From Selaginella moellendorffii (taxonomy: Eukaryota > Plantae > Lycopodiophyta), in NCBI RefSeq assembly GCF_000143415.4, contig NW_003314308.1, forward strand, positions 1,220,654 through 1,284,653: a DNA stretch of 64,000 nt, written 5' to 3'. The position numbers and the translations under genes are program-made. Below the pieces are notes generated by a model, which was not told the origin of the DNA, searched no databases, and saw only the letters and a program-made list of their open reading frames with translations. Positions 8,850 through 52,348 of this stretch are shown piece by piece (positions within the stretch are counted from its first letter, which is position 1; every line of letters starts with the position of its first letter).

Positions 8850-10050
8850 TCCAGTCTTTGGGCACTCGCTCGGTGAACTGCCACACCAGTCCTCTGTGAA
8901 GCTCTCCAAGAAGCTGGGAGTGGTTCCAGCGCTGATGATCGACTTGGCACAATGCGCACTAGAGTTTCTCACACTACACATGAAAAGAATGGGAGCGACA
9001 ATGGATGGGAAAGAATTATATATAACAAGAGGAGAAAGGGTCCTAACTCATGACCCTCCAGTGACCATCTAGCCTATGTGAATCTGGAAGGTGGCAAAAC
9101 ATGTGCCACTTGGAGAAAAGCATATCACCTCAAGAATACAATATTGCATTTGCCTTAAATACAAACTCGAAATATTTGTTCTTTGGCAGCAGGGGGCTGA
9201 ATTCTCCTGCTGGTGACCACTGAAATATAGTGACGAAACTGGTCACTCTGGAGCTCTTCACTTCCAAGAACATGGAGGTATTCAAACCTTGACGTGCTGA
9301 GGGGATTCTCCAGGTGTTGAAATCCATCACTTGCGAGGAGGGAAGCGTAGTCAGCATATGGAACCGGCTCGCTGTGCTCAACGTGAATAACATAAATCAG
9401 ATGGCTTTCCACAAGCAGGTGATTGGCCATCCAATGTTTGAGAGGTTCCTGACGGTATTGAAAGAGTCATTGGATCTCGCGGCTGCATTCAATTAGGTTG
9501 TAGAAATGATCAACGAGATATACCGGATGGTTCTCGACGAGCACAAGTTAAAGAGGAAGGAAACCTACAATGCCGGTCCTTCTGATCTTGTTGATATACT
9601 CCCTGCAGAAGGTGTGGACGAGAACATAATCAAAGGAATGGTCATGGTAACTCATCGTTTTCCTGCCTTCAAAACTTCCAGACCAACTCTTTTTGAATTG
9701 AATTCTGTCGCAGGGTATGCTCTTCGCAGGAACTGAAGAGGAGCTCGATAGAGTTGTGGGACGAGACCGCCATGTGCAAGAAGAGGATCTCGTCTACTGG
9801 AATCCGCCAGTGCCGCTGGTGCTGCCACGCGAGTCAACGTGAAAGTTACGAGCATAAAGTCCCAAAAGTTTCACAGTTTATTGCCAATATCTGAACAGTT
9901 CAAGCCCGAGAGGTTCCTCCATTGTCATTGGGGGAGGGACAGACCATGGTGGAGCTCAACCTTACTAGTCTACTCCAGCCTTTCGATTGGAAAACAGTGA
10001 AGGGGATATGGAGGAGGCTCAAGGGCTGACCACCAAGATGAAAGTGCCTA
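8850..10050 (+). pseudogene. Degenerate CYP71-clan P450 pseudogene (paralog of the downstream CYP)
   Basis: Fragments [63 protein letters not shown] with many deletions, stops and frameshifts. Confidence 0.9.
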
Positions 10051-10114
10051 GAACTCGAAGTCCTCTTGATAAACATAAACTAGCATATACCTGATTCTGC
10101 GACAGTTTTTCGTC

Positions 10115-11676
10115 ATGGATTACCAACAAGCCCACATCTTGGCATTCCCTTTCCCAGCGCAGGGCCATATCAATCCTATGATGTTGCTGTGCCGGAAGTT
10201 TGCCTCGATGGGAATCGTCATCACCTTCCTCAACATTCGCAGCCGCCACAACAATCTGGAAGAGGGCGATGATCAGTTCAGGTACGGTTGTGAGAGTTTC
10301 TTTCCTCCCCGCAAGATCTATTTGGAACCCCAGGTTTGTGAGCATCTCGGATGAGTGCCTACCAACGGGAAGGTTGGGAAACAACGTGATGAGGTATCTT
10401 ATGGCTTTGGAAGAAGGAATGAGGGGTGAATTTGAGCAGATAGTGGCGGATCTCACGGCCGACTCTAGTCGCCCTCCATTGACTTGCATCCTCTCCGATG
10501 CTTTCATGAGCTGGACTCACGATGTAGCCAGCAAGTTTGGAATCTGCCGTGCAGCGCTCTGGACGAGCTCTGCAACTTGGGCTCTCTTGTCTCTACGCAT
10601 CCCATTGCTCAGGGATAACGGAGTCCTGCCAGTGAATGGTAGGCCGAGAAATCTTTCGTTTTCTTTGGTTATAGATCCGTATGTATTCCACAGGGATTCG
10701 AAGTAGCAAGATCCTAGACTTTGTACCCGGACTTCCACCAATCCCAGCACGGTTTCTTCCGGAGACGCTGCAGCCCGATGAGAAAGACCCGGACTTCCGG
10801 TTGAGGATTCGAAGGAATAGTGTCATGCAGAAGGACGCGTGGGTGCTGCTCAACTCGGTCTACGAGATGGAGCCATTGCAGCTGGAGGAGCTTGCCAGCA
10901 GCGACAATCTGCACTTCATCGCCGTCGGGCCCTTGCAATGCCTTACGCAACCGTCGAAGGAACATGCTTCTCAGTGGCAGCAGGATCGAAGCTGCCTGGA
11001 ATGGCTGGACAAGCAAGCTCCGGGCTCGGTCGTCTACATCTCGTTTGGAAGCTTGGCCATCCTATCATATGATCAGGTGGAGGAGATACTGACCGGGCTG
11101 AACAAGAGCGGCCATGCATTCTTGTGGGTCATCCGGCTTGACCTTTTCGAAGGCGAGGAGATCCGAGCCAAGTTCCTGGAAAAGATCAGTCTCATAGATC
11201 GAGGTATTGTCATCCCATGGGCTCCTCAACTAGAGGTTCGTTTTATCATTTGATGATTCTCTAGGTGATCAACATTGAAATTAAGAATCCCTCCCCAGGT
11301 ACTACAGCATCGATCCGTGGGAGCGTTTCTCACTCACTCTGGATGGAATTCCGTCATGGAGGCACTTGCAGCTGGTGTTCCACTGCTGTGTAAGCCTTGC
11401 TTTGCCGATCAGATCCTAAACACCGCTCTTGTGGTGGATCACATCAAAGCTGGCCTTCGTGCCACCAAGCCAGACGATGACAAAGAGGTGAGTTCAAGCC
11501 GCATTCACGAGGTGGTGAGTTTTGCCATGGGAGATGACGGGGGTGAGCTCAGAGAAAGAGTTAAACGGTTGGGTCAGACTCTGGCAGAAGCGGCCGAGCA
11601 TGGAGGATCCTCGTTGTTAAACTTGCAAGCTTTCTGCCAGGACATGAAACGTAGACAGGCTGCCAGAGTAGAATGA
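10115..11676 (+). CDS. Family-1 UDP-glycosyltransferase (463 aa; exons 10115-10281, 10334-10638, 10694-11235, 11299-11676)
   Basis: N-terminal HILAFPFPAQGHINPM with catalytic His. PSPG box WAPQLE/VLQHRSVGAFLTHSGWNSVMEALAAGVPLLCKPCFADQ ends in Q (glucosyl type). Confidence 0.95.
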
Positions 11677-12561
11677 TAAATCCTTAAAATTATCAATCTC
11701 ATGTTGAGATAGAAGTCTTGCCCAAACAATTTCATTAACAAATCCTGGAAAAGTGGCAGAAGTCGCCATTGGTGGTGACATTGCAACGTTGGCAAATTCT
11801 GATCACCCATATGATACTGCTGCAAAAGTTGCTGCTTTATTTGAATTGGCAAACAGCTGGTGGGTCTTTAGATCTAGGTGGTATGTCCTGACATCACATT
11901 GGCCTGGTATATTGAGGACAATTTTTGCCAAGCTGTTGAAGATTTGTCAGCTGAAGATTCAAAAAGAGACAAGTTCTTTGTAGTTCCTGCTGTACCTATG
12001 GCAACTGAAAAGTGATGTGGTGATAATGTTTGTGGGGTGTTGGTTCATTGCATTTTTTGCATATGAATTTTAAAGTATCAATAAGCCACCCAATAAAACA
12101 TTCATATCTAGGGTTCTTCTTTAATTGCAAGTTGAAAAGAATGATCTGATTAAGTTCTCCAGAATTTTCCATAATAGCAACATCTAGAACATTTTCTCTT
12201 ATTTATTAATTTAATTGATAAAATGAAAGTTTATAATTATAAACATGTTTATAATTTATAAACACAAGATTAATCTTATTGAATATCAACCATTAAATGG
12301 TAGAATAAACTAGAATATACTAAAAAGTGTTTAAATAATAATAGTTATCCTAAAATATCTAAGTCTATTCTAAATATATTCAGGATATATGCTTATGTAA
12401 AACCTTTTGCTTGTGGTGCCAAAAAACCTCCACCACACTTGAAAAGCAGGTTAATGGGCACTGTCTACCGGACCCTGCTACTTGCAAACTCTGCTCCTGA
12501 GCAGTCTTCTTCATTTCCTTCCCGCCATAAAAGGGATCATGCTGCTGTGCAAAACAGAGAA

Positions 12562-14071
12562 ATGGAAGCCCTGTCTATCATCCTAGTGGGAGCAGCTACA
12601 CTAGTTCTATGCTCGCTCTTTGCATCGCGCTTCTTGTATCCGCTTCCACCGGGTCCATGGGGTACTCCACTCTTTGGGCATTTGTACTCGCTCGGGGAAT
12701 TGCCACACCAGACTCTCTCAAAGCTCTCCAAGAAGTATGGCCCGATCATGACTGTCAGGCTGGGAATGGTTCCAGCACTGGTGATTGACTCGCCGCAGTG
12801 GGCACGAGAATTTCTTACAACACATGATATTGCATTTGCCTCTAGGCCTCAGAATACAAACTCGAAGTATTTGTTCTTTAATGGCAGCGACGTTGGGTTT
12901 TCTCCGTATGGTGAGCACTGGAGGAATCTGAAGAAACTCATCACTATGGAGCTCTTCACCGCCAAGAAGATGGAGGTTTTCAAATCTCTACGTGCCAATG
13001 GGATCCTCCGCGTGCTGAAATCCATCGCTGCGGAGGAAGGCAACGTAGTCAGCATAAGGAATTTGCTCTCTATGCTCAACATGAACAACATAAGTCAGAT
13101 GGCTTTCAGCAAGCAAGTAATTGATGATCCAATATTTCAGAGGTTCCTGGCGGTATTGGAAGAGTCACTGGATCTCATGGCAGTCTTTGTTCTTGGAGAT
13201 TTCATTCCATTCCTTAAGTGGTTTGATCCTTACGGTTATGTTGAAAAAATGAAGGCCAACCGTAAAGAAATCAGCGGGATATACCAGATGATTATTGATG
13301 AGCACAAGTTGAAGAGAAAGGAAAATTGCACTCCCACTGATCTCGTGGATATACTCCTCTCACAAGGGGTGGACGAGACCACAATCAAAGGAACGATCAT
13401 GGTAATCACCATTTGTGTGCATTGTAAGTTTCATAAACCCACTCTTTCGAATCTTGTCACAGGGCATGTTCGTCGCAGGAACTGACACATCTTCACTCAC
13501 GTCGGAGTGGGCTCTTACCTCGCTCATAAACAATCCAAGCTGCATGAAGAGAGCCCAGGAGGAGCTCGATAGAGTTGTGGGGCGAGAGCGCCGTGTCCAA
13601 GAAGAGGATCTATCCAGTCTTGTCTACTTGAAAGCCATTGTCAAGGAGACCTTCCGGCTGCATCCGCCCGCGCCGCTTCTGCTGCCACGCGAGTCAACCC
13701 AGGAGTGTACAGCCAAAGGCGGGTACAAAATCCCCAAAGGTACACGACTCATTATCAATACCTGGTCAATCGGCCGAGACCCCAGCCTGTGGGAGTCGCC
13801 TGAAGAGTTCAAGCCCGAGAGATTCCTTGAAAAGTCCATCGATATCAAGGGACAAGACTTTGAGCTCATTCCTTTCGGTGCCGGGCGGAGGATTTGTGCT
13901 GGTTTGCCGCTGGGACAGACCATGGTGGAGCTCACCCTGGCTAGCCTGCTACAAGCGTTTGAATGGAAGACAGACAAAACGCTGGATATGGAGGAGTCTG
14001 AAGGGCTGACAACCAGGATGAAAGTTCCACTCGCAGCACATGTTACATGCAGGACTTCTCTCAAGTTCTGA
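12562..14071 (+). CDS. Cytochrome P450, A-type/CYP71 clan (482 aa; exons 12562-13401, 13463-14071)
   Basis: Membrane anchor + LPPGPW, I-helix [19 protein letters not shown], heme PFGAGRRICAG. Single phase-0 intron just before the I-helix. Confidence 0.95.
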
Positions 14072-16760
14072 ATCTTTGCATATCAGATTTGGTCCTCCTA
14101 TTATAGCTTTGTTGTGAGATGCCAAAGCCTTATCTAATTCATCCTTTGTGTTTAAGATTTTATTATTAGGTTATTCAACTCTGTGTTTTCTTGCAACCAA
14201 AAGTACCACAACACAGCCAGTCCAAAGTTGCGTCGTTGGTCTCCAAGAAACGTGGAAGCTTTGACAACTTCTTGGAGGAGACTCTAGAGTCGCTGCCGAA
14301 AGTATAGGATACAAGCTGCCCCGCCTCCTAAGGTGGAGAACTTTTGCTTGGTTCTGGAAGTGTTGGAAATGACTAACCTCTTGCTCTTGCTTCCGGAACT
14401 CAAGAAATACTTTCTGAGTTATTGGTTGGATCTCAAGTGAACTTGAAAACCAGTTTAGCCTGGAATATAATTTCGAAAAGGATTGAGCGTCCACGACCTC
14501 GCTCACCCACTTGTTAAAGGTCACGGTTTCTCTTACATCATTGAGACGAGGATTTCTGTTTGTTGCTACTCACCGCAAAGGTACCAAGGACAACTTTAGA
14601 GAGGCGACCACTGCAAAGGACGCACTCATTGAGATCGTCGTCTTGTGCAAGTTTTCAGACAATAAGTGCGGAAAAACATTGCGGGGCCACTTCTAAGCTA
14701 CACGAGAAGATTGTGCTGCGCTTGGATTGGCCTCCTAGGACGCGAGAGCTGGGCGCAAAAAGATGAAAAGGATTTGTAGACGAAGACGTGCATGTGGTTG
14801 TGGCAAGCCCAAATCAAGCAATTGCACCTTCCAAAGTTTTCATTGTCGCTTTTCCAGAGTGTGGCCAGAACAACAATGTGAAACTTGTCCCGCATCCCGC
14901 TCTCCAGATGCGAAACAAAAGAAATGGAAGCCAAGGTCATACTAGGAGCAGCCACACTACTAGTTCGTTGTTCTCTGCTTGTATGACTTTTGTTTCATCA
15001 GCGTTCATTAACTCCAGTCTTTGGGCACTCGCTCGGTGAACTGCCACACCAGTCCCTTGTGAAGCTCTCCAAGAAGCTGGGAGTGTTTCCAGCGCTGATG
15101 ATCGACTCAGCGCAATGCGCACGAGAGTTTCTCACACTACACATGAAAAGAATGGGAGCGACAATGGATGGGAAAGAATTATATATAACAAGAGGAGAAA
15201 GGGTCCTAACTCATGACCCTCCAGTGACCATCTAGCCTATGTGAATCTGGAAGGTGGCAAAACATGTGCCACTTGGATGTCATGAGGAGAAAAGCATATC
15301 ACCTCAAGAATACAATATTGCATTTGCCTTAAATACAAACTCGAAATATTTGTTCTTTGGCAGCAGGGGGCTGAATTCTCCTGCTGGTGACCACTGAAAT
15401 ATAGTGACGAAACTGGTCACTCTGGAGCTCTTCACTTCCAAGAACATGGAGGTGTTCAAACCTTGACGTGCTGAGGGGATTCTCCAGGTGTTGAAGTCCA
15501 TCACTCGCAAGGAGGGAGCATATGGAACCGGCTCACTGTGCTCAACGTGAATAACATAACTCAGATGGCTTTCCACAAGCAGGTGATTGGCCATCCAATG
15601 TTTGAGAGGTTCCTGACGGTATTGAAAGAGTCATTGGATCTCGCGGCTGCATTCAATTAGGTTGTAGAAATGATCAACGAGATATACCGGATGGTTCTCG
15701 ACGAGCACAAGTTAAAGAGGAAGGAAACCTACAATGCCGGTCCTTCTGATCTTGTTGATATACTCCCTGCAGAAGGTGTGGACGAGAACATAATCAAAGG
15801 AATGGTCATGGTAACTCATCGTTTTCCTGCCTTCAAAACTTCCAGAACAACTCTTTTTGAATTGAATTCTGTCGCAGGGTATGCTCTTCGCGGGAACTGA
15901 AGAGGAGCTCGATAGAGTTGTGGGACGAGACCGCCATGTGCAAGAAGAGGATCTCGTCTACTGGAATCCGCCAGTGCCGCTGGTGCTGCCACGCGAGTCA
16001 ACGTGAAAGTTACGAGCATAAAGTCCCAAAAGTTTCACAGCTTATTGCCAATATCTGAACAGTTCGGTTCCTCCATTGTCATTGGGGGAAAAGACTTTGG
16101 GCTAACCTATCAGGACTGGGACAGACCATGGTGGAGCTCAACCTTACTAGTCTACTCCAGGCTTTCGACTGGAAAACAGTGAAGGGGATATGGAGGAGGC
16201 TCAAGGGCTTGTTGTGGTGTGAAAAGGGATGAACATAACACTCATGAGCTCGTTCATTGTGTTCCGACTCTTTTTACATGACTTGACTCATGACCACGTG
16301 GACATGCCACGTCAGCTGATCGAGACTGACATCTCGACACTCCATCAGCTGAGAGGATGGACTACCCCTCCCACTCAGCCGAAACAGATGGAGAGCAGAC
16401 TCCCAGTGCAGCACAATGGCGTTCAAAGGAGTCTCGAGCCAAAGCCTTCGTGAGTATATCAGCCACCATTGCCTCGGTGGGGCAATATTCCAGCAACAAC
16501 TTTCCATTTTGGACTTGTTCCCTCACGTAGTGGAAACGAATCTCGATGTGTTTCGTCCGAGAATGGAAGCGTGGATTGGCGGCCAGTGCAAGAGCACTTT
16601 GGTTGTCCGAGAACAGCACCATAGGGCCGGTGCAAGCAGGAATCTGGGGCAGGTCACGGCAGAACTGGGTCAACCAAATCGCTTCTTTGCTGGCAGCGGT
16701 TAGGGCAATGTACTCTGCCTCTGTCGAGGACAGAGCCACCAGCGGCAGCCGCTTACTGAG

Positions 16761-19221
16761 TCTAAGACCACTTGCAATATAGTTTTGTCTTTCCAAGATT
16801 AAGCTATCCATCCATGAGTGATCATCCCATGATTGCACCTTAACATCCTTATAATGCCCCAATACATAAAAAACACCATCCTTCAATATCCTTATTTTGG
16901 TCCCCATTGAATCCCTTTCCGTCAATTGTAGTGTTTGCCAACACTACCACTGGGTCAAAGCCCAAAGGCCCAACCATTAAATTTCTTTGACTTGTGGACT
17001 TTCCTCACCACATGATTATACTTTTAGTCACTAAGCAAGAGGACCATTCCTTTTTTTTTTTATAGTCCAAAACTTAAGGATGACATTTCAAAACACCACA
17101 GCTCAATGCAAGCTTTGTGAGTACTCTCCCCATCTTCTACCACTAGGATGCCCTAACCATATGACTAAAGTGAGGTTTTGATGAGCCACACAATATATCC
17201 AAATAGGTAATGCCAACCACACTTAAATTGGGAGTATTGACCATTTAATATATTGGGGGAGATAAAGTTAATTCTTGAACACTTCACTAAATTACCCCAC
17301 TTGTTTATTTGTGTTTAATTTAGCCTTAAACTCCTCATGGTTATATCATCACCCACTGATGTAGCCATAAAGTGGTGTAAGACCAGGCTTAAGTGGACAT
17401 TGCCAATAGAAATTTACAAACCTTAAAAATATGACCAAGATGAAAAATCAACTCTGAAATATATGGATTGAAAGTAGCATGATATTGATTTAACAATTTT
17501 CCCTTTTTTTAAGTATATTATTATCCTTTTCTAATTTCAATTTCTCACATTTCTTTGTATGAGTTTTGAGATGCTAGCTGTCAAGATCTTCATTCTGTTT
17601 TACATTTATTTTTCATCTAACATTAGCTTCATCTATCATGATTAAATCCACTCTTCCCTTCAAGTATGCCAACTTCAAAGATGTTTGTTGACAAAAGGAG
17701 AGCTAACATTTTGCCATCATATCAATCTTGTGGAGGGGAAATCACCACTATTTTATCTTATCTACAATCTTTAATCAATAGAATTATAGTGTAATATAGG
17801 CATATCTATTACAAATGTGTCTATGCAGTATCAAAAGTTATATATTGGCTTGTCTTTTTGGATATTTTTCTTTTATTACCATGATAGTAGAAGATTGGTA
17901 TTGTTAGACTCTTTATCAATCTCTACCTATGCTAGTTCAGAAACTAGTTAGTAAATGTGTGCTTAGACTGGAAGAACACTAAGAACAAAAATCTTAAACT
18001 ATTATTTAGTCAATTATATTTGATATGGTGATGAGAAACTCATATTATTATATTACACTTGGTAATGTTATGAACCCCAATAGTCCCTTAATATTCCCTT
18101 CATCGAGGAGGCAAATAAGGCTTATGCGAGGCTCTAAATGTATAGTAAAGAGAATGGATAAGTAGGGCATAGTTGAGCAACTTGATATATTGTCTAGCTC
18201 TTTGTTAATCTAGTTTAGGTGTAAGCCCAAACTCCATACTATGCTAGCTAATGAGGTACTTATATCCTTGTGTATAGGCTATTTGTATGTTGAAATAATA
18301 TCAAATTTTGTTTAGCTTTCATTTGTATGCTAATTTTGATCTTAAAAGTTTTAGGACTATTCTAATATTGTTCCATATTCATATTCCTTAGTAATGAATA
18401 TAATATATTGAGATGTTGGTACCCTTGGATGTTGGAAGTAAAATCAAATACATGGAATATTTGGACTAAGTGCCAAGCCAATATAATCTTGAGATTACAT
18501 CTAGGGGTAAGCAAGTACCCTAAGACAAATGAAGAGAGTGAAATTCCTTAAAAAAGTCATAGGTATGGTTATATGACTAAAGTAGAATGAAAAAGCTTGT
18601 CCCTTATAACACGTTTGGACTAAAACTTTTGACTTAAATAGTTCAGAATAGAAATGGAACTTCTAAAGAAGCATTTAAAGGATGAGTATGAAGATATCAA
18701 AGAATGAGCACAAAGTGATTGATAAACAAGTCTTTAAAAAGGGACAAAAGAATGATTAAAATGTGGCAAATGTTATGACACATGGAAGTGTTAAGACTAA
18801 AGTCCTAGAACCTAAGAGCTCAAAGTGGAATGATGTTGGAATTAATTTACCCCATTAAGAAACTAAATGTTTGAAGTGTCAAATATGGAGATATCTTGGG
18901 CTTGATATATCTAGGGTTGCATATATCAAGTTTCTATGGAGGATTCTAGGGGAATTAGTATGACTAAGGAAGGCTATATTCATAATATGAACACAAGGGA
19001 ATTTAAGGCTAAAGTGAATATAAATAAAATGACTTAATGATGTGTTTAAGAGTTGCTAGCTCCTTTAGAAGATTAAATAATTAATGCTACTTATTTAGAT
19101 ACTTTGACTCAAAGAAACCTCACTTTAGCCATGTGGCTAATGTTATTAAGACTTAGTAGATGGGCATTTATGACTTGACCTAGTAGCAATATTCACAAGC
19201 ATTTAATGGGGATTGAAAAAA
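16761..19221. mobile_element. Degenerate LTR-derived insert interrupting the Copia RNase H
   Basis: RNase H ...GAAVS | LSKRLPLVALSS is split. The insert matches the solo-LTR family at 36.8-43.9 kb (e.g. catccatgagtgatcatc) in both orientations. No clear TSD. Confidence 0.75.
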
Positions 19222-38016: not shown

Positions 38017-38690
38017 TGTAGCGCATGTGATCATGGGATGAGATTTGGATATACTGTCACTGTGGATCCTTGGAACCTTGGGGGATAAATGGGGATAAAA
38101 TAGCCACTAAGGGCTCTCTCATCAAGCAATTGCCCCTTTTCCAGTTGGCCTAAGGGGAGAGAGATAAGGTGCGCTACAGTTGGTATCGGAGCAAATGGCA
38201 CGGGTTTGATTCCCATTGATTAGTGGCTACTTAAAAGTATAATATACCCTTGAGCAAGGTATATTCCTACCCCTAAATTTGAAATCGTATGTATTGGGCA
38301 TCCATACGTACGTCCTTCCTCTTGTGTGGAGTATCCACGGACGAAGGTATCCACCGTGGGACTGCGGTATGGGTGGATGACTAGTTGCCTCACATGGAAT
38401 AGCTGGTCTACACAATGGAAGGATTGGTAGATTGAGTGCGGAAATGGAGGTGCTGGTTCCCCTTGGCTCAGTAGGGGTTGCTAGTCAATAGTCAATGAGG
38501 ACATTGACATTTCTGAAGGGGGGGTGAGTGTAGCGCATGTGATCATGGGATGAGATTTGGATATACTGTCACCGTGGATCCTTGGAACCTTGGGGGATAA
38601 ATGGGGATAAAATAGCCACTAAGGGCTCTCTCATCAAGCAATTGCCCCTTTTCCAGTTGGCTTAAAGGGAGAGAGATAAGGTGCGCTACA
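38017..38690 (+). mobile_element. Complete TRIM (162-bp LTRs 38017-38178 and 38529-38690)
   Basis: LTR ends TGTAGCGCA...TGCGCTACA. PBS TGGTATCGGAGC (tRNA-iMet-like), PPT GAAGGGGGGGTGAG, TSD ATTTC/ATCTC, non-coding internal part. Confidence 0.92.
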
Positions 38691-38788
38691 ATCTCGGGTC
38701 CATCTCAAACTCATTCTTAGACTCCATCTTTGGTCTACCTTGGACTCCTTCTCAGACTCTATCTTAGGTCCATCTTGGACTCCAACTT

Positions 38789-39731: not shown

Positions 39732-40594
39732 AACTTAAGTTTAATCTTAACACTTTCACATATCATGTATTGATCCTCTTGTGTCTATTTTCTAAAGGCT
39801 CGCTTATTGATTGTTTCGTGCTTATTCCTTAATCACTTTATTAAGAGTTCCACCTTTGCTCTTGACTTTTCAAGTTGGAGCTTTTAGTCCAAACGTGTTA
39901 CACTTGTTTAGCTTTTGCTTCAGCCACTACCACATGGCACCCTCTCAGCTCCACTTTAGAGCTTAGGGATTTGTGTTTCACACTACTAAAGCTTATGAGA
40001 TATAAATCCCTAAGCCCTAAATTGGAGATGAAAGGGTGCCACATAATAGTGATCAAAGTGGAAATCCAATAATCATAACATGTTTGGATCAAAAGTTCTA
40101 ACTTGGAAAGTTGAGAGTGGGAGTGGAACTTTGAACAAAGTGCTCGAGAATGAAGCAATCGGTGAATGAGTCTATAAAAAGGGATATAAGAAGGACTGAC
40201 ACATGGAAGTGTCAAGATTAAGTCCAAAAAAGAGTTTAAGAAGGAGTTTAAAATGGAGTCTAAAAAGGACTTCAAAAAAAAACATCTAAGATGGAGTTTG
40301 ATATAGACTCGAGATGGAGTCTGAGATGGAGTCTGGTATAGACCTAAGATGGAATCTGAGATGGACTTGAGATGGAGTCTGAGATGGACCAGAGATGGAG
40401 TCCGATATCAAGTCCGAGATGGAGACCAAGACCTGGTTTGAAGTCAAGTCCGAGGTCGAGTCTGAAGTTGAGGTTGAGACTGAGCCTGAGACTAAGACTA
40501 AGACCAAAACCAAGACTGAGTTGAAGACCGAGTCCAAGACTAAGACTGAGACCGAGATCGAGACCAAGACTGAGTCCAAGTCCAAGTCTAAGTC

Positions 40595-41130
40595 TGTAAC
40601 GCATGTGATCATGGGATGAAATTTGAATATACTGTCACTGTGGATCCTTAGAACGTTGGGGGATAAATGGAGATAAAATAGCCATTAAGGGTTCTCTCAT
40701 CAAGCAATTGCTCCTTTTTCAATTGGATTAAAGGGAGAGAAATAAGGTGTATTATATGTGGTATTGGAGTAAATGGCATGGGTTCAATTTTTATTAATTA
40801 GTGGCTATTTAACAATATAATGTACCCTTGAGCAAGGTATATTCTTACCTTAAATTTGAAATCATATGTATTGGGCATCTATGCGTACATCCTTCCTCTT
40901 GGTAGAGCATCCACAGATGAAGGTATCCATTGTGAGACTGCGGTACGGGTGGATGATTAATTGCCTCACATGGAATAACTGATTTACACAATAGAAGGAT
41001 TGGTAAATTCAATACGGAAATGGAAGTGTTGATTCCCCTTGGCTTAGTAGCTAGTAGCCATTAAGGGCTCTCTCATCATGCAATTACCCCTTTTTTAATT
41101 GGCTTAAGGAGAGAGAGAGGGTGCATTACA
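40595..41130 (+). mobile_element. TRIM copy with internal deletion, TSD AAGTC
   Basis: tgtaacgcatgtgatc...gtgcattaca flanked by aagtc on both sides. Confidence 0.85.
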
Positions 41131-41284
41131 AAGTCTGAGTCTGAGTCCAAAGGTGAAAGCCCAAAATGATCATCTCTTAGACCCTAGGGGGTATGGTGAG
41201 CTCCAAAAATATAGTAGGGGGAGGACTTTAGTGGAGCTAGTTTGGCTAGGAAATGCCAGTGTGATTAAGGAAGGCCATACCCAT

Positions 41285-43052
41285 TGTGAGACATAAATCC
41301 CAAAGCCTCAAAAGTGGAGCTGAAAGGGTGCCATATGGTAGTGGCTGAAGTGGAAGCCAAACGAAAATAACATATTTGGACTAAAAGTTCCTACTTAGAT
41401 AGTCAAGAGTGGGAGTGGAACTCCCAACAAAGTGATCAAGGAATGAGCATAAAGCAAGCAGTAAGTGAGTCTCTAGAAAAGGGACACAAGAGGATGAACA
41501 CATGACATGTGGAAGAGTCCAAGATGGAGTCTAAGATGGACCCGAGATGGAGTCCAAGATTGAGTTCGAGATGGAGCCTGGGATGGACCTGAGATGGAGT
41601 CTGAAATGGACCCAAGATGGAGTCCGAAATGGACTTGAAGTGGAATCCAAAATGGAGGCTAAGATGGAACCGAATTTGAGTCTGAGTTTGAGTTTGAGTC
41701 CGAATACTAATATAGGTTATTGGGTAAAAGCCCAAAGCAATCATCCCCCGGGAGAGTGTAGGGGTTGGACCCCAGTGGAGTTAGTTTGGCCAGGAAAGGC
41801 TAGTATAACCCAGGAAGGCTATGCCCATGTTGGGTAATGATATATCCACTAAAGAGTCCAAAGCTAGAGTGAATACGGATAAACAGGTAAAGTAGTTTAG
41901 TGAAGTGTTCAAGAGTTGGCTTTAGTTCCCCCAAGAGATCGAATGGTCAATGCTCCTAGTCCAAGCATGGGTAGCACTATCTACTTGGATACGTGGCATG
42001 GCTCAACGGAACCTCACTCTAGCCCCATGACTAAAGCACCCAAAGGTGGAAGGTGGGGAGAGTACCTATGATGCTCACTTAGGGCTACGGTGTTCTGAAA
42101 TGTTGTTCCAAAGTCCCTGATTATGGAAAGGAAAAGGGGCAATCCTCTAGTGTAGTGACAAAGGATACTATTACATAGTGAAGAAGTCCTAAAAAATAAT
42201 GGGATTTAGTGGTCAGGCCAGTGGGCCTTGACCCAATGGCAATGTTGGTGAACATGACTATGGACAAAAAGGGACTTGGTGGGGATTTGTAGCGTATATA
42301 ATTATGGGATGAGATTTGGATATACTGTTACCATGGATCCTTGGAACCTTGGGGAATAGCTAGTCTACACAATAGAAGGATTGGTAGATTCAATGCAGAA
42401 ATGGAGGTGCTGGTTCCCCTTGGCTCAGTAGGGGTTGTTAGTCAATAGTCAATGAAAACATTGACATCTCTAAAAGGGGGGTGAGTGTAGCGTATGTGAT
42501 GATAGCATGAGATTTAGATATACTATCACCATAGATCCTTGGAACCTTGAAGGATAAATGGGTATAAAATAGCCACTAAGGGCTCTTTCATCAAGTAATT
42601 GCCCCTTTTGTAGTTGGCTTAAGGGGAGAGAGATAAAGTGCATTATAGGATTGAAAAATGCATATTAGGGAAGGTTATTCCCCATATCTGCAAGCATTTT
42701 AAAGATGCAAAAGAGTGGATGTAAGATGACCACTCATGGATGGATGGCTTAGTCTTTGAGAGACGGGACTATGATGTAGGTGGTTTTGGATCATCAGTGT
42801 GACAAATGTAAATGGGCATGGCCTTAGCGTAATGGGCTGATATGTCAATGGTACCTTTAGGTGTCGGTCATGGGATCGGACATGTGGAGCACTTGGACCA
42901 AGTGCAAAGGTTGAGTGGCATGGATGTCATTTTTGGGACTAGCAAGCCCTAAATCCGAAATAGAACTTATGAAGATTGTAAATGAGATTCCTCCAGGTGG
43001 TCAGAGGTGTGGTTAAATGATTAAAGTAAAATAGAAAATTTAGTCGTTTACA
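41285..43052 (+). mobile_element. Family-L solo LTR nested in its own family, TSD CCCAT
   Basis: TGTGAGAC...GTTTACA, with cccat at 41280-41284 and 43053-43057. Confidence 0.85.
42288..42647 (+). mobile_element. Deleted TRIM copy, TSD GGATT
   Basis: tgtagcgtat...gtgcattata flanked by ggatt. PPT retained. Confidence 0.82.
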
Positions 43053-43899
43053 CCCATGTGGTGGGTGATAATATAACCACTGAGGAGTCCAAGACTAAAG
43101 TGAATATAGACGGATAAGTGGGGTAACTTGGTGAAGTGTTCAAAAGCGGCTTTAGCTCCTCTGGAAAATTGAATGGTTAATGCTCCCAATCTAAGTATGG
43201 GTGGCATTACTTACTTTGATATTTAGTGTAGCTTATCAGAACCTTGCTCTAGCCACATGGTTAGAGCACTTAAGGGTGGAAGGTAAGGAGAGTACCCACA
43301 ATACTTGTATAGGGCCTTGATGTTTTGAAATATCATCCTAATGTCTTAGACTGTGGAAAAGAAAAGGAATAATCCTCTTATGTAGTGATTAAGGATATGG
43401 TCACATGGTAAGGAAGTCCTAGATGTCAATGGGACTTAGTGGTCAAGCCTTCAAGCCTTGACCTAGTAGTTGTGTTGGTGAGCATGGTTATGGATGGAGG
43501 GGGACTTCATAGGAACTAAAGAAGGGACATTAAGGAAGGGTGTTTTTTATGTCTCCAGACATCCTAAGGATGTTAAAGTGTGGTCTTAAGATGACCACTC
43601 ATGGATAAATGGCCTAATTTAGGAGAGATAAAAGTATAGTATAGCTTTAGTGTAATGGGCTAAGATGTCAATAGTACCTTTGGGGTGTTAGTCATGGGAT
43701 TGGACACATGGAGAACTTAGACCAAGTGTAAAGGCTAAATGGCATAAATGCCATTCTTAGGGCAATTTAATAACTTAACCACACCTTTGACTATTTGGAG
43801 GAATTTCACTCACAATTTCCATAAATCTTATTCCTAACTTGGGGACATGCTAATGTTAAAAAGTTTTTAAAATTCATTAATAATAGCTGTAATACTTGT

Positions 43900-46800
43900 T
43901 CAACAAAAGTGGAGCAATATTCAAATTGATATCTTTGACTACACAATCAAAATGGTACTTTCATAATAACAAGAAAACCACAAAAATCTACTAATCTACT
44001 ATACCAGTCAAAGATTCAATTTAGTTTAGATGAATTACACCACCATCAAAAATGAAGTTCTCAAAATGGTCTATGCATTTTAGATATTTTGACATTACCT
44101 CTTTGGCAATAAAGTGAAGATTATGGTCGATCATAAAACACTTTTACACTTTTTCATAAAACCATCCTCATCTATAAAATTGCTCGATGGTTTTTACTTC
44201 TTAAAAAATATAACTTCCAGATCATTCATAAACCCAGCAAACAACATAAACAAACACATTAGCCGTATTACGACATATGAACAACTAAAGTATAACATGA
44301 ATGACTTCTTAAATTTAAACATCTTGTGAGTCTATACTTCACCAATTTGAATACATGACATCTACCACTAGACAACAACAAGATTTCATACCAATATATT
44401 ACTTCAGACCAACACAAACAATTTGTTTTGAGGATAAAATTATATTCAACCGTGGGAGGAAGACTATATAAAAAAAGATTAAACAATGTATTATAAAGAT
44501 GTGTACAACTTGAAAAACTCAAGATTTACTTGATGAAATTCGCTATGGACAAATACAAAGGCACTTTGCAAAAAAAATCACAGCTCGAAAGATTTTACAA
44601 GATAATCTTTGGTGGCCAGACACTCTAAAATGATTTAACAAAATTTTGTCAAAAATTCAACATTTATCAAAGAACCAAATATATGAGAAAAAAAAAAGAA
44701 TCAAGAACTTTATTCTAGAACTCCTCTTGAATAATTTCAACGATGGGGACTCAACTTTGTAGGACTATTTACAATAAGTTCCAAGCAAAAAAAATACATC
44801 CCTATAGCTACTAACTATATGACGAAGTGGGTCAAAGTTAAACTAATGAAGGCTATAACAACGAAAAGCACAGCAAAGTTCATTTATGAAAACATTATTC
44901 ACAAAATATGGTTTACCTTGAAAACTTATTATTAATCGAGGAACACTCTTCATAAAAAAAACTATCAATATTCTAACTCAAGAGTTCATAATCAAGCACA
45001 GAGCACCAACACCATACTATCCTCAAAGAAATGGTTAAGCCAAATCTACAAACAAGACCCTTAAAAATATACTCAAAAAGATCAAAAGATGAATCTAAAA
45101 GATTGGGACAATTGCATCTATAATGCCTTATAGGATTATTGAATTACTTACAAGGTTTCAATAAATTTGACACCATTCAAGCTCACCTACGGCTTAGAAG
45201 CATTTGAGTACATTGTTTTTCATTGCGAATAACAATACATTATGAGATCAACCAAGAAGAGTCAATCAGAAAAAGATTAGCAATGCTAAAAAAATTTGAT
45301 AAAGAATGACTACAAACAATTTGGACTCATTAAGCTATTTAAACTAGAAGAAAAACTAACCATAATAGAAAAAGACAACTCAAGAAAAGTGAAGAATTCA
45401 AAGTTGGATATCAAATTCTATCGTTTAAAGTAAATAAAAAGAAAATTGGCTCAAAAATAAAATCAAGATAAAAAATACCATTCTTTGTCTAACAATTTAA
45501 AGCTCTAGTAATGGTAGCAATTATAACATTTGACGACGAATATCTCCAAACTATCAACTTCAACAAGCTCAAAAAATATCAATCGATTGACACCAATTTT
45601 ATCAGCAATGATGTAGAAAGAAGTGAAGATTACAACTTTGAAACTCAAAAATTCAATATAGAAGAAAATCACAAACATAACACTCAACAATTCAAGGATT
45701 TACAACACAAAATTCAAGACTTCAACAAAAAAAAAATCAATTCAAGAAAATCAAATTCAAGAAATTAAACTCAAGAACCAACTTAAGAAATCAACTCAAA
45801 GAAGAACTTCAAATATCAATTACAAGAAGGCAACTCTAAAAAAATTCTCGAAATCAAGCTCAAAAACTTAATTCAAAGAAAATTTTCAAACTCGAAGTTC
45901 AAGGAATCAAGAAAAGACTAAAATCAACAATCATCACAATTCACTAAAATTCAATAATAAATATGCATAAGATCAAGAGAAAACAAGTTTCAACAAGAAA
46001 ATAACAAGAAAGAGAAAATTTAAGCTAGAAAATCAAACTTAAACCACTTAACAATTAGTCAAATTTGGAGAAATGTTGAAATTCCTGAACTTCATAGCAT
46101 GCAGCCAAGTTTGGAGGACATCCTAAACCCTAAACAAGTGATGGATTAATCTCCTGTAGACACACTCCCTAAAGTGATCACTTGCTAGAGACACTCCTTG
46201 AACTTTGGTTCATTCTTGGTCAAGACTAAACTCACCTCACAAACCTAACCGCCTCTTGTATTGCACTTGTATTGCCAACAATATTGTGTGCCAAGATCAA
46301 GAAAATGAAATAGGAAAGTGGGGCATATAAGCATGCAGCATTGCTAAGGAGTTCATCTTCAATCCCAAGGCACTCAACATGATCAAGGTGAGTCTCCTTT
46401 GTAATCCTATTTGGAATAAGATTGAAAAGCTTAACACATGGCTACACGAAGTCAAACTTTACGAGTTCTCAAAGATCATGGAGAAGTTATACAACATCAA
46501 TATCACCAAGAAGCTTCTCTTAGCATATAAGGAAGAATTCATGCACACCAACGACTACAAGTTTGTCTTGAGTGCCAAGTATTTTGCATAGACATTCAAA
46601 CTTCCCACTAGTGGAGAGCCAGTGACATTGATTCCATACATGAAGGGGATTCCACTAAAATGTATCAAGGTACATGAAAACTACAACAACAGAAATTTTG
46701 TGCAAATGAACAATGTGATCAATGAAGCTAAGTTACAACTCAAGTTTTTGATCTCCATATTAGAGATGTGCAAGTCCATGACTTCCGCTAGCAAAGCAAT

Positions 46801-47460
46801 TGCAATTCTCTACAATGACTTATAGCAAAAGACACAAGTTGACATTGCCAGTTATCTCCATGACAAGATCATCAAGGAATTTAGCAACAAAAGACTAGGC
46901 AAAGCCATGAAGATAGAGACATTACGAACACGAAGAAAAAGAGAATGTGCTTCAAAAATATGAGAAGATTTGATCCTCTTCGGACTAGCAAAGAGACAAA
47001 AAGCATCAATTAAGACAACACCACCCATTCATAAGGCCAAGGTAACATCTACACAATAGTAAGAAATTTGTCAAGAGAACGACCAACAACAAAGATCATG
47101 AAGCTTAAGGTGAGGAAATTCAAAAGAACACTGAAGAATAAGATCCTGAATACATAACTACCTTGTTGGATGATGCCAAGAATGAGATAAGTGCCAAGAA
47201 GGAGGTTCCAAACCTATAGTCATCACAACTAAAGGAGGGTAATATGAACATGACCTAGCAGGAGCAGCCTCTAGCATCTCCACCACATGCGGCAACACTA
47301 ACAAATCTAGCTCTTGACACCAATACCAATAGCATCCCACATCACCATGTACATCACAGTCAAGAGTGTCCCAAGCAAGAGTGATGTCGTGAGCCCAAGC
47401 TTCCACACTAGATCTTAAGCTCGGCATTTCTCCAGTTTATGGACAAAATGCAATATCTCC
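43900..47460 (+). mobile_element. Decayed Ty3/Gypsy internal region (RNase H - integrase pseudogene, then further ORF remnants)
   Basis: NYTTIKNEVL..MVYAF, HYLFGNKV..MVDHKTL, GHFAKKITARKILQ..LWWP, QRWGLNFVG, TPYYPQRNG, TPFKLTYGLEA with stops. RH-before-IN order indicates Gypsy. Confidence 0.82.
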
Positions 47461-47530
47461 AGCTGTTATAAATATGACTGTGGATATAAAAAAATTACTT
47501 ATCGACAAATCCTTTTGAATATTTTTTTTC

Positions 47531-47617
47531 TATTTTTATCCCTATTTATCCCCCAAAGTTTTAAGGATTTACGGTGATAGTATATCTAAATCTCATCCCA
47601 TGATCACATGCGTTACA
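47531..47617 (-). mobile_element. Partial TRIM LTR, reverse orientation
   Basis: Reverse complement reads tgtaacgcatgtgatcatgggatgagatttagatatac... Confidence 0.75.
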
Positions 47618-48915
47618 TTGTGTATGATCTTTGATAAATATGCACTTATTCAATTATTATATTAATAATATTCTCGTCTATAGAGTTGTGAGATGAAAGG
47701 AGAAGACACTCTAGCTCAAGTTCATTTTTAGACACTATTGAACAAAATATGCCAAATTAGAATATGATTTTCAACACCACCAATGTTTTATAGTTTCATA
47801 AGTGACAAAGTGTAAAAGAATTTACAAACTATTAAAACCATCTATAATGGTGGTTTAGATAAAGTTTTAATCGGGTGAGAGAGGAATTGCTTATTCCATT
47901 GGGAGTAAAGTATACATGAACACATAGAAAAATGCATTTGAGTGGAATGCCTTGATGAGCACAAGCATTTATGTTGGAGATTAAAAGCTAAAAACACTTT
48001 AAAAGATGTAGAATAGATTTGGTTGGCATGGTGGTTTACTCATTTTCCACATTGGGGGACTCTAATTATTTCTCAAGTGAGCAAATATTAGCATTGATCC
48101 TTTTTATTAATTCTCTTTTTATTATAGATGAGTTCTAAAATAGTTATTACCCAAATTCCAACAATAAATTTTACCAAAAGTTACTATGTGATATGGCTAA
48201 CAAAAATAAGTGGCTTGAAAAATAAACCTCTATCTAAAGCTTGTTGAAATGACTTAATCATTTTTATCTTATAATAGGCCTTTATGCATACTTATATAAA
48301 AGGCCAAGTTATAGGAAATGGACTAAATGTTGAGGATTTAGTGGCACGCTTATCTATTATAACATCAACATGATATTTTAGTTCATAGAATTGATAAAAT
48401 CAACTTTAGATGATTTTGGAATTCAATTCGCAACAAAACCAAATAACCTTGAAATTATCATAAGTGACAAACAAATGAGCTGATATAACTAATAGTTTCG
48501 CACTATAGTATGAGTATATTACTAGAGAACGAGAAGGACAAATAATTTCAGGCAACTAAGATCTCATATGCTTCCAAGTCAAAGAATAAAAAATTCAGAA
48601 GATTGAGTGAGATATATGACAATCTAAAATAAAATCTACAATCAAGTGTCTTGCTTGGATTGGAGGAAAAATATGTGGTAAGCAGATTACTTTAGGAATT
48701 TTATGCAACAATAATAATATGGTGATCTTCCACAACACAATAATCAGTTTATATGGTTCTGTCCAACATAAAGTTTGCACACATAGTTTGTTACAACATA
48801 GATTATCCAATAACTAGAACATGTACTATGTACTTATCTAATTGAAAAAAGGGTGAATTTGACAAATTTGGAGCTTTAAGCTTTGGTTAAAGCAAGCTTT
48901 AAATTTGAAGAGAAC

Positions 48916-49548
48916 TGTAGCATATGTGATCATGAGATGAAATTTAGATATACTGTCACCATGAATTCTTAAAACCTTGGAGGATAAATAGGGATAAAAG
49001 AGCCACTAAGGGCTTTCTCATCAAACAATTACCCCTTTTCCAATTGGTTTAAGGGGAGAAAGATAAAGTGTATTATAGTTGGTATCGGAGTAAATGGCAT
49101 GGATTCGATTCCCATTGATTAGTGGCTATTTAAAAAATATAATATACCTTTGAGCAAGGTATAATTCTACCCCTAAATTTAAAATTGTATATATTGGGTA
49201 TCCATGCGTATGTCCTTCCTGTTGTGTGGAGTATCCATGGACAAAGGTATCCACCATGGGACTGCGGTACGGGTGAATAACTAGTTGCCTCACATGGAAT
49301 AATTGGTCTATACAATGGAGATGTTGATTCCTTTTGGCTCAGTAAAAGTAATTAATTAATAATGAATGAGGACATTGACATCTCTGAAGGGGGGGTGAGT
49401 GTAGCGCATGTGATTATGAGATGAGATTTGAATATACTGTCACCGTGGATCCTTGAAACCTTGGAGGATAAATAGGGATAAAATAGTCATTAAGGGCAAT
49501 TGCCCTTTTTCCAGTTGGCTTAAGCAAAGAGAAATAAAGTGCGCTATA
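48916..49548 (+). mobile_element. Near-complete TRIM copy (no matching TSD)
   Basis: Two LTRs, PBS tggtatcggag, PPT gaagggggggtgag. Confidence 0.85.
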
Positions 49549-50512
49549 GTACACTTTATTGCCACAACCACAAGTTTAACCTTAACACTATTTTTAAGAA
49601 GTTCTGAAAACAAGAAATAACAAACATGTAAAGATTATAAATATTTAGTCAAAGGAAGCAAAAATAACATACTCAAAAGCATTACAGTTGAAGGTGGAAG
49701 TTATCATGGGTATATAGTTCTCAATTATGAAATTGATATTGTAAATGGAAAATTTACAACATCATAATGAATCAATTCCTAAGTTGCACTTGTGCATTCT
49801 TTCAATAGTAAACTTCTAATAAATCTTCCATCCTTTGTAAATATATATATTTTGTATATTGTATGTTTCTCTGGGATGGATCTAAATGTTAAATTTTGGA
49901 TTCATCACTCTGCAATGTTTAAACATGGGGTGTTTATGACATTGAGAAAGAATTCAATATTGATATTGTATTTGAATTTTATATAATATAAATAAATTTT
50001 TATTTATAAATTACATCTAAAACAATATAGAGAATTTCTTATAATAGGGATTTTATAGTAATAATGAAAAATTCAATACAAATATACATTATAAATTAGA
50101 GGATGCTAACTTAAATAATTAGTATAATACTAATTATTAAATATTAAAATAATATTTTCTTCTGTAAACTAGTTGATAAAGCATAACATCTATTAAATAG
50201 CAACTATTGCCACTATGGTAGTTTACACAGATCTAAATATTTAAAATTATTAATTTGGTTTAAAATACCTATTTAATAAGAATATTGCTGTTAAAACCTA
50301 AAAGGAATATTCTTTGTTGTGCTAATATTCTTAAAATGTTTTTGTCAACTCCGGAATGTCTGTTTGGACCAGGACGAGCAGTTGATTCGCCGAATCTATT
50401 TTCTATATGGCTCCTCACACTCAACGACGCGATAAAAGTCTTCTGGGGGTGTTCCAGACAGTGGAGCGCTGTTACAAGGTATATCTTGAGCGCTTAGAGA
50501 TCTCTAGCTGCC

Positions 50513-52348
50513 ATGGCCACCGTGAATGGATCGCCCAAGATCGATCCAGACGCCCTCGTCGATGCCTGGCTCGCGCGATTGGATTCCTCTCTCGCCTCCG
50601 GCGATGCATCGGCCGCTGCCAATCTCTTCGAGGAATCCACTTCGTTCTGGCGGGATCTCATCGCGTTCACCTGGAACATCGTCACGGTCGAGGGCCGGTC
50701 ACAGATCCACGCCATGCTCCAATCCACGCTCGAATCAGTCGCGCCCAAGGGTTGGGTCCGCAACGGTACCGCCAGCTACAGCGCGGACTCGGGCGTCATT
50801 GAGGCCTGGATCAAGTTCGAGACGCGCGACGCGGTATGTACGGGGCATTTGCGCCTGATGGCCACTACTTCCCTCTGTCGTACGCTACTCACCGCCATGG
50901 AGGGGCTCAGGGATTTCCCAGAGAATAAGGGCCGTACGCGGCCCAACGGTGTGACGCACGGCGTCATACGGCACCGCGCGTCATGGCTGGACGGGCGCAA
51001 GGAAGAGGAGCGGACGCTGGGCAGTACCGTGCAGCCCTATTGCGTCATTGTCGGGGGTGGGCAGGCGGGTATCGGGCTTGCCGCGCGGCTCCGGCAGCTC
51101 GGCGTGCCGTGCATTGTTGTAGAGAAGAACCCGCGGCCGGGCGATTCGTGGAGGAACCGCTACAAATCGCTGTGCCTCCACGATCCGGTGTGGTATGATC
51201 ATCTCCCCTATTTGCCATTCCCGGAGAATTGGCCGATCTTCGCGCCCAAGGACAAGATGGGAGATTGGCTCGAGGCGTACACCAAGATCATGGAGATTAA
51301 CTACTGGACCTCCAGCGAGTGCCTGGGAGCCCGATTGGATCCACAGTCCGGAGAGTGGGAGGTGAAGATCCTGCGAGATGGGAGCAAGGAGGTGACCTTG
51401 CGACCCAAGCAGCTCATCCTGGCGACCGGGATGTCAGGATTTCCCAATGTGCCACGGATTCCCGGGCAGGAGGAATTCGTGGGCGGTCTCCATCACTCGA
51501 GCAAGCATCCGGGAGGCGAAGCTTACAAGGGGAAGAGAGCGGTGATCCTGGGATCCAACAATTCGGCCCACGACATCGCCGCCGATCTCTGGGAGAATGG
51601 CGCCGCGGAGGTGACGATGATCCAGCGATCCTCCAGTCACGTTGTTCGATCGGAGTCGCTTTTCCGCTTCCTGACGCAGGAGATCTACTCGGAATCGGCG
51701 GTAGAGTCGGGGATCACGACTGACAAGGCGGACATGATCTTCGCGAGCTTGCCATACAAGATCATGGGCGATGCCCAGCGATGCAATTCCGATGCGATCC
51801 GAGCCCACGACAAGGATTTCTACGCCGCGCTCACCAATACTGGATTCATGCTCGACTTTGGCGACGACGACTCGGGGCTCTTCATGAAGTACCTCCGCCG
51901 TGGATCCGGCTACTACATCGACGTGGGCGCATCCCAGCTGTTGATCGACGGCGAGATCAAGCTACGCAGTGGCGTCACCATCGCGTCGCTCAAGCCGAGC
52001 TCGGTGGTGCTGAGCGACGGTACGGAGATCGCGGCCGATGTGGTGGTTTTAGCCACGGGGTACGGATCTATGAACCAATGGGCCGCGAAGCTAATCTCCC
52101 AGGAGGTGGCGGATCGCGTGGGCAAGTGTTGGGGGCTGGGATCGAACACGCGCAAGGATCCCGGGCCGTGGGAGGGGGAGCTCCGGAATATGTGGAAGCC
52201 CACCGCGCAGGAAGGGCTGTGGTTCCATGGTGGGAATCTCCACCAGGCTCGTCACTACTCGCTCTATCTGGCGCTACAGCTCAAGGCGAGGATGGAGGGA
52301 ATCGCGACGCCGGTGTATGGCATGCCCAAGGTCCACCACCTCAGCTAG
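50513..52348 (+). CDS. Type II (bacterial-like) flavin-containing monooxygenase, 611 aa, intronless, copy 2
   Basis: Same motifs as copy 1, about 32 aa differences. Homologous ~150 bp upstream region (50360-50450 vs 30519-30610). Confidence 0.93.
   Translation: MATVNGSPKIDPDALVDAWLARLDSSLASGDASAAANLFEESTSFWRDLIAFTWNIVTVEGRSQIHAMLQSTLESVAPKGWVRNGTASYSADSGVIEAWIKFETRDAVCTGHLRLMATTSLCRTLLTAMEGLRDFPENKGRTRPNGVTHGVIRHRASWLDGRKEEERTLGSTVQPYCVIVGGGQAGIGLAARLRQLGVPCIVVEKNPRPGDSWRNRYKSLCLHDPVWYDHLPYLPFPENWPIFAPKDKMGDWLEAYTKIMEINYWTSSECLGARLDPQSGEWEVKILRDGSKEVTLRPKQLILATGMSGFPNVPRIPGQEEFVGGLHHSSKHPGGEAYKGKRAVILGSNNSAHDIAADLWENGAAEVTMIQRSSSHVVRSESLFRFLTQEIYSESAVESGITTDKADMIFASLPYKIMGDAQRCNSDAIRAHDKDFYAALTNTGFMLDFGDDDSGLFMKYLRRGSGYYIDVGASQLLIDGEIKLRSGVTIASLKPSSVVLSDGTEIAADVVVLATGYGSMNQWAAKLISQEVADRVGKCWGLGSNTRKDPGPWEGELRNMWKPTAQEGLWFHGGNLHQARHYSLYLALQLKARMEGIATPVYGMPKVHHLS

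Follow-up and report, generated by a model that had tools for sequence, protein, structure and literature searches.

A 64,000-nucleotide stretch of the Selaginella moellendorffii genome (contig NW_003314308.1, positions 1,220,654 to 1,284,653; here called the window) carries genes predicted to encode three unrelated classes of tailoring enzyme: family-1 UDP-glycosyltransferases (UGTs), CYP71-clan cytochromes P450 (P450s), and flavin-containing monooxygenases (FMOs) of a bacterial type. An earlier note made from the sequence had proposed that these genes form a specialized-metabolite cluster. Our analysis favors another reading: the locus is probably a real neighborhood of enzyme genes in a duplication-prone, transposon-rich region, where the three classes are adjacent by coincidence, and not a dedicated three-enzyme pathway. 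The gene structures, intactness, family membership, and duplication history were established, as was transcription of all three classes. We infer that the FMOs most likely lie beside the UGT/P450 pair by coincidence, and the catalytic activities given below are likewise the most likely ones.

The layout of the locus (Table 1) was derived from an open reading frame (ORF) listing with Pfam searches and a self-comparison of the window, after which gene models were built by hand. On the plus strand, the order is P450 relic, UGT-A, P450-A, P450 relic, UGT-B, P450-B, FMO-1, and FMO-2. Window positions 2970-26006 are 100% identical to GL377612.1 1223623-1246659 in the S. moellendorffii assembly GCA_000143415.2. 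The other assembled haplotype is represented by scaffold GL377619.1, where this locus recurs at ~95-98% identity. The earlier note had listed two UGTs, four P450s (one intact, one frameshifted, and two decayed), and two FMOs, and we recovered all of them on the plus strand, at or near where it had placed them; it also had the three enzyme classes right. The unrelated gene and transposable elements that it described as interruptions correspond here to a spliced gene on the minus strand, the remains of a Copia element, and a spacer rich in repeats.

UGT-A (exons 10115-10281, 10334-10638, 10694-11235, and 11299-11676) and UGT-B each have 4 exons, 3 GT-AG introns of 52-63 nucleotides (nt), and 463 codons, and they differ at 10 residues. 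Both retain the catalytic dyad of His18 and Asp111 and a complete PSPG box, with WAPQ at 333, HSGWNS at 351, and FADQ at 373, which is the pattern of family 1. The Pfam match to UDPGT scored E = 1.7e-13. By these features, both are family-1 plant UGTs, and family membership predicts that they would most likely glycosylate an acceptor, with a UDP-sugar as donor, by means of His18/Asp111 and the PSPG box. Comparison with individual UGT families was done by exon-wise searches, with at least 40% identity over the whole protein as the yardstick for UGT85, and gave mixed answers. Among solved structures, the central ~180 amino acids matched UGT85B1 best (7ZER; E = 6e-23, ~35-40% identity by eye), and UGT85H2 was also among the closest. 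Unlike this central segment, the C-terminal segment preferred UGT73C1, and a segment-wise search with the N-terminal acceptor domain gave no clear family match.

P450-A (exons 12562-13401 and 13463-14071; 482 amino acids) has the PPGP, AGTDT, ETFR, PERF, and FGAGRRICAG motifs, the set that marks the CYP71 clan, and its single intron is at the position typical for A-type P450s. These motifs, together with its top matches, identify it as a CYP71-clan member. As such, it is most likely a monooxygenase anchored in the endoplasmic reticulum that would hydroxylate a small molecule. Its top matches were CYP71-, CYP750-, CYP75-, and CYP76-like proteins. Compared with named seed-plant families, identity was only 38-46%, with CYP750-, CYP71-, and CYP75-like proteins on top. 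The best nonallelic matches (45-49% identical) were other S. moellendorffii P450s, a Cryptomeria CYP750A1-like protein, and one Diphasiastrum protein, and no homologue with more than 50% identity was found outside S. moellendorffii.

The remaining P450 copies are broken. In P450-B, the frame is lost after approximately residue 387, upstream of both PERF (398) and the cysteine loop that binds heme (418-427), and this copy does not have the CYP71-clan motif set. The coding remnants of relic 1 (8782-10049) and relic 2 (14924-16184) match P450-A piecemeal, in several frames, at 33-57% identity. The I-helix (AGTDT) is missing from both relics, as is the PERF region, and relic 1 additionally lacks the Cys loop. 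In relic 2, a partial match resumes at P450-A residue 421, and part of its Cys loop may survive. On GL377619.1 (L002 1790-3947; P0122, P0123, and P0126), decayed relics are annotated publicly as "P450" proteins of 246-386 amino acids, one of which is named CYP71AV8. These models have neither the I-helix nor the heme loop and look like pseudogene artifacts.

FMO-1 and FMO-2 share 95% amino acid identity and 96% identity of their coding sequences, and the other haplotype has SELMODRAFT_422043, to which FMO-2 is 97% identical. Residues 13-611 align with the Baeyer-Villiger enzyme JsFMO of Janthinobacterium svalbardensis (PDB 8ACS; E = 5e-253). An N-terminal, SnoaL-like extension of ~160-170 amino acids precedes the FAD-binding GxGxxG motif, which reads GGGQAG at 181-186. 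GDSWR(S/N)RY begins at 210, the FMO motif FVG(D/G)LHHSSKHP is at 322-333, and the NAD(P)H motif GSNNSA is at 347-352, with Asn in place of the second Gly, as in the type IIb/Seedless consensus. His223, Asp224, and Tyr467 are identical in both copies and correspond to JsFMO His216/Asp217/Tyr458, by an offset inferred from the alignment. The type IIb motif consensus, including FxGxxxHxxx(H/Y/F)P and GDSWRNRY, is given in PMC7570161 and PMC13557801. The former already places four S. moellendorffii sequences among the type IIb FMOs, and the latter, which also includes S. moellendorffii members, describes a "Seedless FMO" family and states that no member of it has been characterized; no substrate is known for any plant Seedless/type IIb FMO (PMC13557801). 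On alignment and motifs, FMO-1 and FMO-2 are type IIb FMOs, the same family as Seedless FMO. They are predicted, most likely, to be soluble FAD/NAD(P)H enzymes for Baeyer-Villiger or heteroatom oxygenation, which would proceed by way of a flavin C4a-peroxide and would involve His223/Asp224/Tyr467, the residues shared with JsFMO. Their characterized relatives are bacterial Baeyer-Villiger and sulfoxidation enzymes only.

The FMOs might have come from bacteria. Of the best 120 proteins in the first search, 118 were bacterial or metagenomic (61-66% identity), and the remaining two consisted of the Selaginella allele cluster and a single unnamed protein from a EukProt transcriptome. The genes in Selaginella have no introns, and their G+C content at third codon positions (GC3) is 0.78, versus 0.58-0.69 in neighboring genes. 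They share 63-66% identity with proteobacterial enzymes but only 47% with an intron-bearing member from the fern Ceratopteris. In trees, they fell inside an otherwise bacterial clade to which the Ceratopteris protein was sister. The approximately unbiased (AU) test did not reject a single Selaginella plus Ceratopteris clade (p = 0.49). A separate bacterial transfer into Selaginella is possible.

Two fern loci add to the picture of this family. On chromosome 18 of Ceratopteris richardii (L004 10001-17596; neighbor KP509_18G002500), at least two Seedless FMO genes with introns lie side by side; one encodes 615 amino acids over 7.6 kb, and they share only 47% identity with the Selaginella genes. 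In Adiantum nelumboides JAKNSL020010964.1 (L008 10001-11781), an intronless type IIb FMO homologue is divided between two frames that overlap (10001-10708 and 10597-11781). This homologue shares 59% identity with the Selaginella FMO and groups with it in the mostly bacterial clade. It might represent contamination, an error of assembly, or a transferred gene in decay.

Self-comparison of the window revealed three pairs of homologous blocks: 8206-9901/14393-16065, 10022-11924/23530-25409, and 12408-14385/25504-27476. They represent a single tandem duplication, head to tail, in which a 6.2-kb unit consisting of a relic, a UGT, and a P450 (8206-14392) is repeated as 14393-27476. The second unit is split by ~7.5 kb that includes the broken Copia element. 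The other haplotype has one unit only, with the minus-strand gene and then the FMO-1 allele immediately after it. The protein encoded by P450-B exon 1 is 100% identical to the intact P450 of the other haplotype. Therefore, the FMO-adjacent copy is the original, and it was inactivated in the window haplotype. In both haplotypes, the genes follow the order P450-UGT-P450-FMO. The earlier note had described each class as locally duplicated; the copies do exist, but those of the UGT, the P450, and the relic stem from one tandem event and are single in the other haplotype.

The FMO pair has a different history. Upstream, FMO-1 and FMO-2 share ~100 nt at 78% identity, and downstream they share nothing (30510-32484 versus 50353-52348). 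Their coding sequences differ at 71 positions, 29 of which are within coding nt 1122-1326 (~200 nt). Because the coding sequences are 96% identical, the flanks have diverged, and the differences are clumped, this suggests that the pair duplicated earlier and was either homogenized by gene conversion or held alike by strong constraint. The two genes are separated by 18 kb in the window and by ~54 kb in the other haplotype.

The layout of the locus began with tandem duplication of the unit made up of a decayed P450, a UGT, and a P450. A Copia element then interrupted the second unit, whose P450 lost its heme-binding end through an 11-bp deletion; the other haplotype has a single unit. Downstream, beyond the unrelated minus-strand gene, the two type IIb (Seedless) FMOs appear to be older paralogues.

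The duplications might instead be an artifact in which two haplotypes were joined in tandem in the v1 assembly. The S. moellendorffii assembly does contain both haplotypes, and the divergence between the tandem units (1.3-2.6% mismatches) resembles allelic divergence. However, GL377612.1 has two UGT-P450 sequences and GL377619.1 a third, all distinct, and a diploid can contain three only if one or both haplotypes have undergone a real duplication. The junction at 14392/14393 is also a clean head-to-tail repeat of the unit that starts at 8206. We regard such an artifact as very improbable.

To follow transcription, we used sequencing runs that hold window DNA, which are transcriptome-like assemblies because their contigs carry splice joints. 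Four runs from four studies were compared (X1, X3, X8, and X14). UGT, P450, and FMO were all transcribed. The UGT 3' end was present in three of the four runs, with an exact UGT-B match in X3. P450 contigs occurred in all four, including a 1539-nt contig in X1 that is spliced at 26492/26554, and so did the FMO-1 5' end, with exact matches in X3 and X14. Two contigs, one from X1 and one from X3, cross position 26875, and both carry the 11 nt missing from P450-B. Therefore, only the intact P450 copy was seen as RNA. In a second run search, runs from at least four studies contained no less than half of a stretch that joins the UGT 3' end to P450 exon 1, which means that both UGT and P450 transcripts are present in them.

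The k-mer depths of the contigs, in the order UGT/P450/FMO, were 28/30/53 in X1, 363/5/626 in X3, 80/~3/~500 in X8, and 0/~3/6 in X14. Contig k-mer depth is a poor measure of expression, by the tool's own warning, and four runs give a weak hint. Within that limit, UGT and FMO depths co-varied, and P450 depth was out of step with both; in X3 and X8, UGT contigs were deep and P450 contigs were shallow and fragmentary. Co-expression had been put forward as a check on the proposed cluster, and its outcome was divided: all classes were transcribed and UGT and FMO moved together, but the P450 did not follow.

We also looked for the partners and the conserved linkage that a shared pathway might leave. 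Neither the window ORFs nor the genes called at the allelic loci gave a Pfam match to a scaffold-forming or first committed enzyme, in agreement with the earlier note, and Pfam found no further enzyme genes in the window. There is no CYP79 at the locus. The closest P450 paralogues (47-49% identity) are in a P450-only array or alone, with no UGT or FMO beside them, and the Diphasiastrum P450 homologue is also alone, with neither a UGT nor an FMO at its locus. The FMO loci of Ceratopteris (7.6 kb, intron bearing) and Adiantum (intronless, frameshifted) have no other called gene, P450 or UGT, within 10 kb, although neighborhoods of this size are uninformative given the large genomes of ferns. We found no literature that mentions these locus identifiers. 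An expression-atlas preprint for S. moellendorffii contains no gene-cluster analysis, and plantiSMASH 2.0 treats a different S. moellendorffii cluster.

Several observations weigh against coincidental adjacency. Three nonhomologous tailoring classes (at least three enzyme genes) are on one strand within ~22 kb here and ~17 kb in the other haplotype, and all three are transcribed, with co-varying UGT and FMO depths. The decoupling of the P450 comes from only four runs and an unreliable measure. We take the S. moellendorffii genome to have ~22,000 genes, ~225 P450s, ~100 UGTs, and some ten class-B FMO loci; with random placement of these numbers, ~0.06 FMO loci per genome are expected to lie no more than six genes, in either direction, from both a P450 and a UGT. 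By that estimate the triple is uncommon, but the value ignores the after-the-fact choice of this enzyme triple. Because the triple was picked post hoc from many combinations, and because these families cluster in dynamic regions, adjacency is weak evidence, and the co-location is not clearly beyond chance.

The co-location on one strand in both haplotypes, the transcription of all three classes, and the co-varying UGT and FMO depths would also suit a true biosynthetic gene cluster, in which the Seedless FMO, the CYP71-clan P450, and the UGT would act in sequence on one substrate to make a lycophyte-specific glycoside, for example by hydroxylation, then Baeyer-Villiger or heteroatom oxygenation, and then glucosylation. 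Two more findings fit such a pathway: the middle segment of the UGT is nearest to a cyanohydrin glucosyltransferase, UGT85B1, among solved structures, and both FMO copies have been kept intact despite their diverged flanks. However, the locus has no scaffold or signature enzyme by Pfam, in the window or the allelic loci, and its FMOs are not of the oxime-forming N-Ox family. The FMO-adjacent P450 is broken in the window haplotype, P450 depth is decoupled from that of UGT and FMO, the linkage is not kept at the paralogue or fern loci that we examined, and an unrelated gene and transposons interrupt the region. We think a true three-enzyme cluster unlikely, and a lycophyte cluster that is at work today, in which a Seedless FMO, a lineage-specific CYP71-clan P450, and a UGT make an oxygenated glycoside, slightly more doubtful still. 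Of the cluster proposed in the earlier note, the co-location stood, but the shared pathway stays an unlikely hypothesis with no support beyond adjacency, given that Pfam found no scaffold enzyme and that no conserved linkage was seen at the loci examined.

A smaller pathway is conceivable in which only the UGT and the adjacent P450 cooperate, by hydroxylation and then glycosylation, and the FMOs are unrelated neighbors. In both haplotypes and both tandem units, the two genes share a strand and are separated by 0.5-0.9 kb, and both transcripts are in runs of at least four studies. However, their co-duplication is the mechanical outcome of one segmental duplication and is uninformative on function. 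The contrast between deep UGT contigs and shallow, fragmentary P450 contigs in X3 and X8 does not suit joint action, nor does the fact that the closest P450 paralogues have no adjoining UGT. Such a two-gene module is also unlikely, if somewhat likelier than the three-enzyme cluster, and coincidental neighborhood is the likeliest of the three readings.

Among the closest known systems are the cyanogenic-glucoside clusters, such as CYP79A1-CYP71E1-UGT85B1 of sorghum and their equivalents in Lotus and cassava. Like them, the window has an oxygenase, a CYP71-clan P450, and a family-1 UGT close together, with a central UGT segment nearest to UGT85B1 (7ZER). Unlike them, it has no CYP79, its P450 is only 38-46% identical to the named seed-plant families, and the N-terminal acceptor domain of its UGT is without a clear family match. 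The earlier note had cited the fern oxime synthase FOS1, an FMO that replaces CYP79, as a precedent. That parallel did not hold, as FOS1 is assigned to the N-Ox family (PMC13557801), whereas the window FMOs are type IIb/Seedless. We rejected the cyanogenic-glucoside/FOS1 analogy because it fails at the oxime-forming step.

The FMOs themselves resemble the type IIb/Seedless/sister-YUC enzymes (JsFMO, 8ACS, and Rhodococcus FMO-E/F/G) in their full-length alignment, family motifs, and His/Asp/Tyr active site. They depart from them in their intronless, high-GC3 genes and in being nearer to proteobacterial enzymes than to the Ceratopteris member. The locus as a whole also resembles the tailoring-only clusters predicted by plantiSMASH-type searches, with at least three enzyme classes, a small interval, local duplications, and no core scaffold enzyme. 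Apart from the inclusion of a Seedless FMO, nothing separates it from such unvalidated predictions, and as it stands it is one of many unvalidated "tailoring-enzyme" neighborhoods. Its main value now is the corrected annotation, which distinguishes intact from broken copies and gives the duplication history and the FMO family. If the genes did share a pathway, their three small genes would be a practical starting locus. A true cluster would reveal, for the first time, a physiological role and a substrate of a Seedless FMO, and it would illustrate how an enzyme that may be of bacterial origin was taken into plant metabolism.

Table 1. Features of the S. moellendorffii locus (positions in the window)
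Feature	Positions	Strand	Details
P450 relic 1, pseudogene	8206-10049	+	Coding remnants 8782-10049, in three frames
UGT-A, intact family-1 UDP-glycosyltransferase, 463 amino acids	10115-11676	+	4 exons, 3 GT-AG introns
P450-A, intact, CYP71 clan (A-type), 482 amino acids	12562-14071	+	One intron, 13402-13462
P450 relic 2, pseudogene	14393-16184	+	Copy of relic 1, 88-95% nt identity; opens second tandem unit
Degenerate Copia-type retrotransposon remnant	19180-23134	-	gag, zinc knuckle, gag-pre-integrase, integrase core; broken ORFs
UGT-B, intact copy of UGT-A, 463 amino acids	23623-25183	+	10 amino acid changes
P450-B, frameshifted	25654-27152	+	11-bp deletion after 26875
Unrelated spliced gene	27190-30300	-	At least 6 introns, repetitive long exon
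FMO-1, intact, transcribed	30649-32484	+	Single 611-amino-acid ORF
AT-rich spacer with dispersed and inverted repeat fragments (transposon debris)	32485-50512		18 kb
FMO-2, intact paralogue of FMO-1	50513-52348	+	Single 611-amino-acid ORF

The minus-strand gene (~27.2-30.3 kb) is highly represented among the transcript contigs, which reveal at least six introns, read as CT..AC on the plus strand. It is head-to-head with FMO-1 (27190-30300 on the minus strand and 30433-30899 on the plus strand), and the contig ends are ~130-350 nt apart. A shared, bidirectional promoter region could therefore explain the abundance of FMO-1 transcripts with no link to the UGT. Pfam found no family in the long exons of this gene; by eye only, its spliced translation has a macro-domain-like stretch.

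No long terminal repeat pair was found for the Copia remnant. By allelic annotation, the left flank (1-7808) contains a GRF-type (QLQ/WRC) transcription factor gene and, on the minus strand, genes for a nucleoside diphosphate kinase and an ABI-family protein. A Pro/Ser-rich ORF of 415 codons at 6561-7808 had no Pfam match. None of these left-flank genes is an obvious metabolic partner. On the right, a single 1063-codon ORF on the minus strand (56566-59757) encodes a pentatricopeptide-repeat protein that is kept in the other haplotype, where it is annotated with 734 amino acids.

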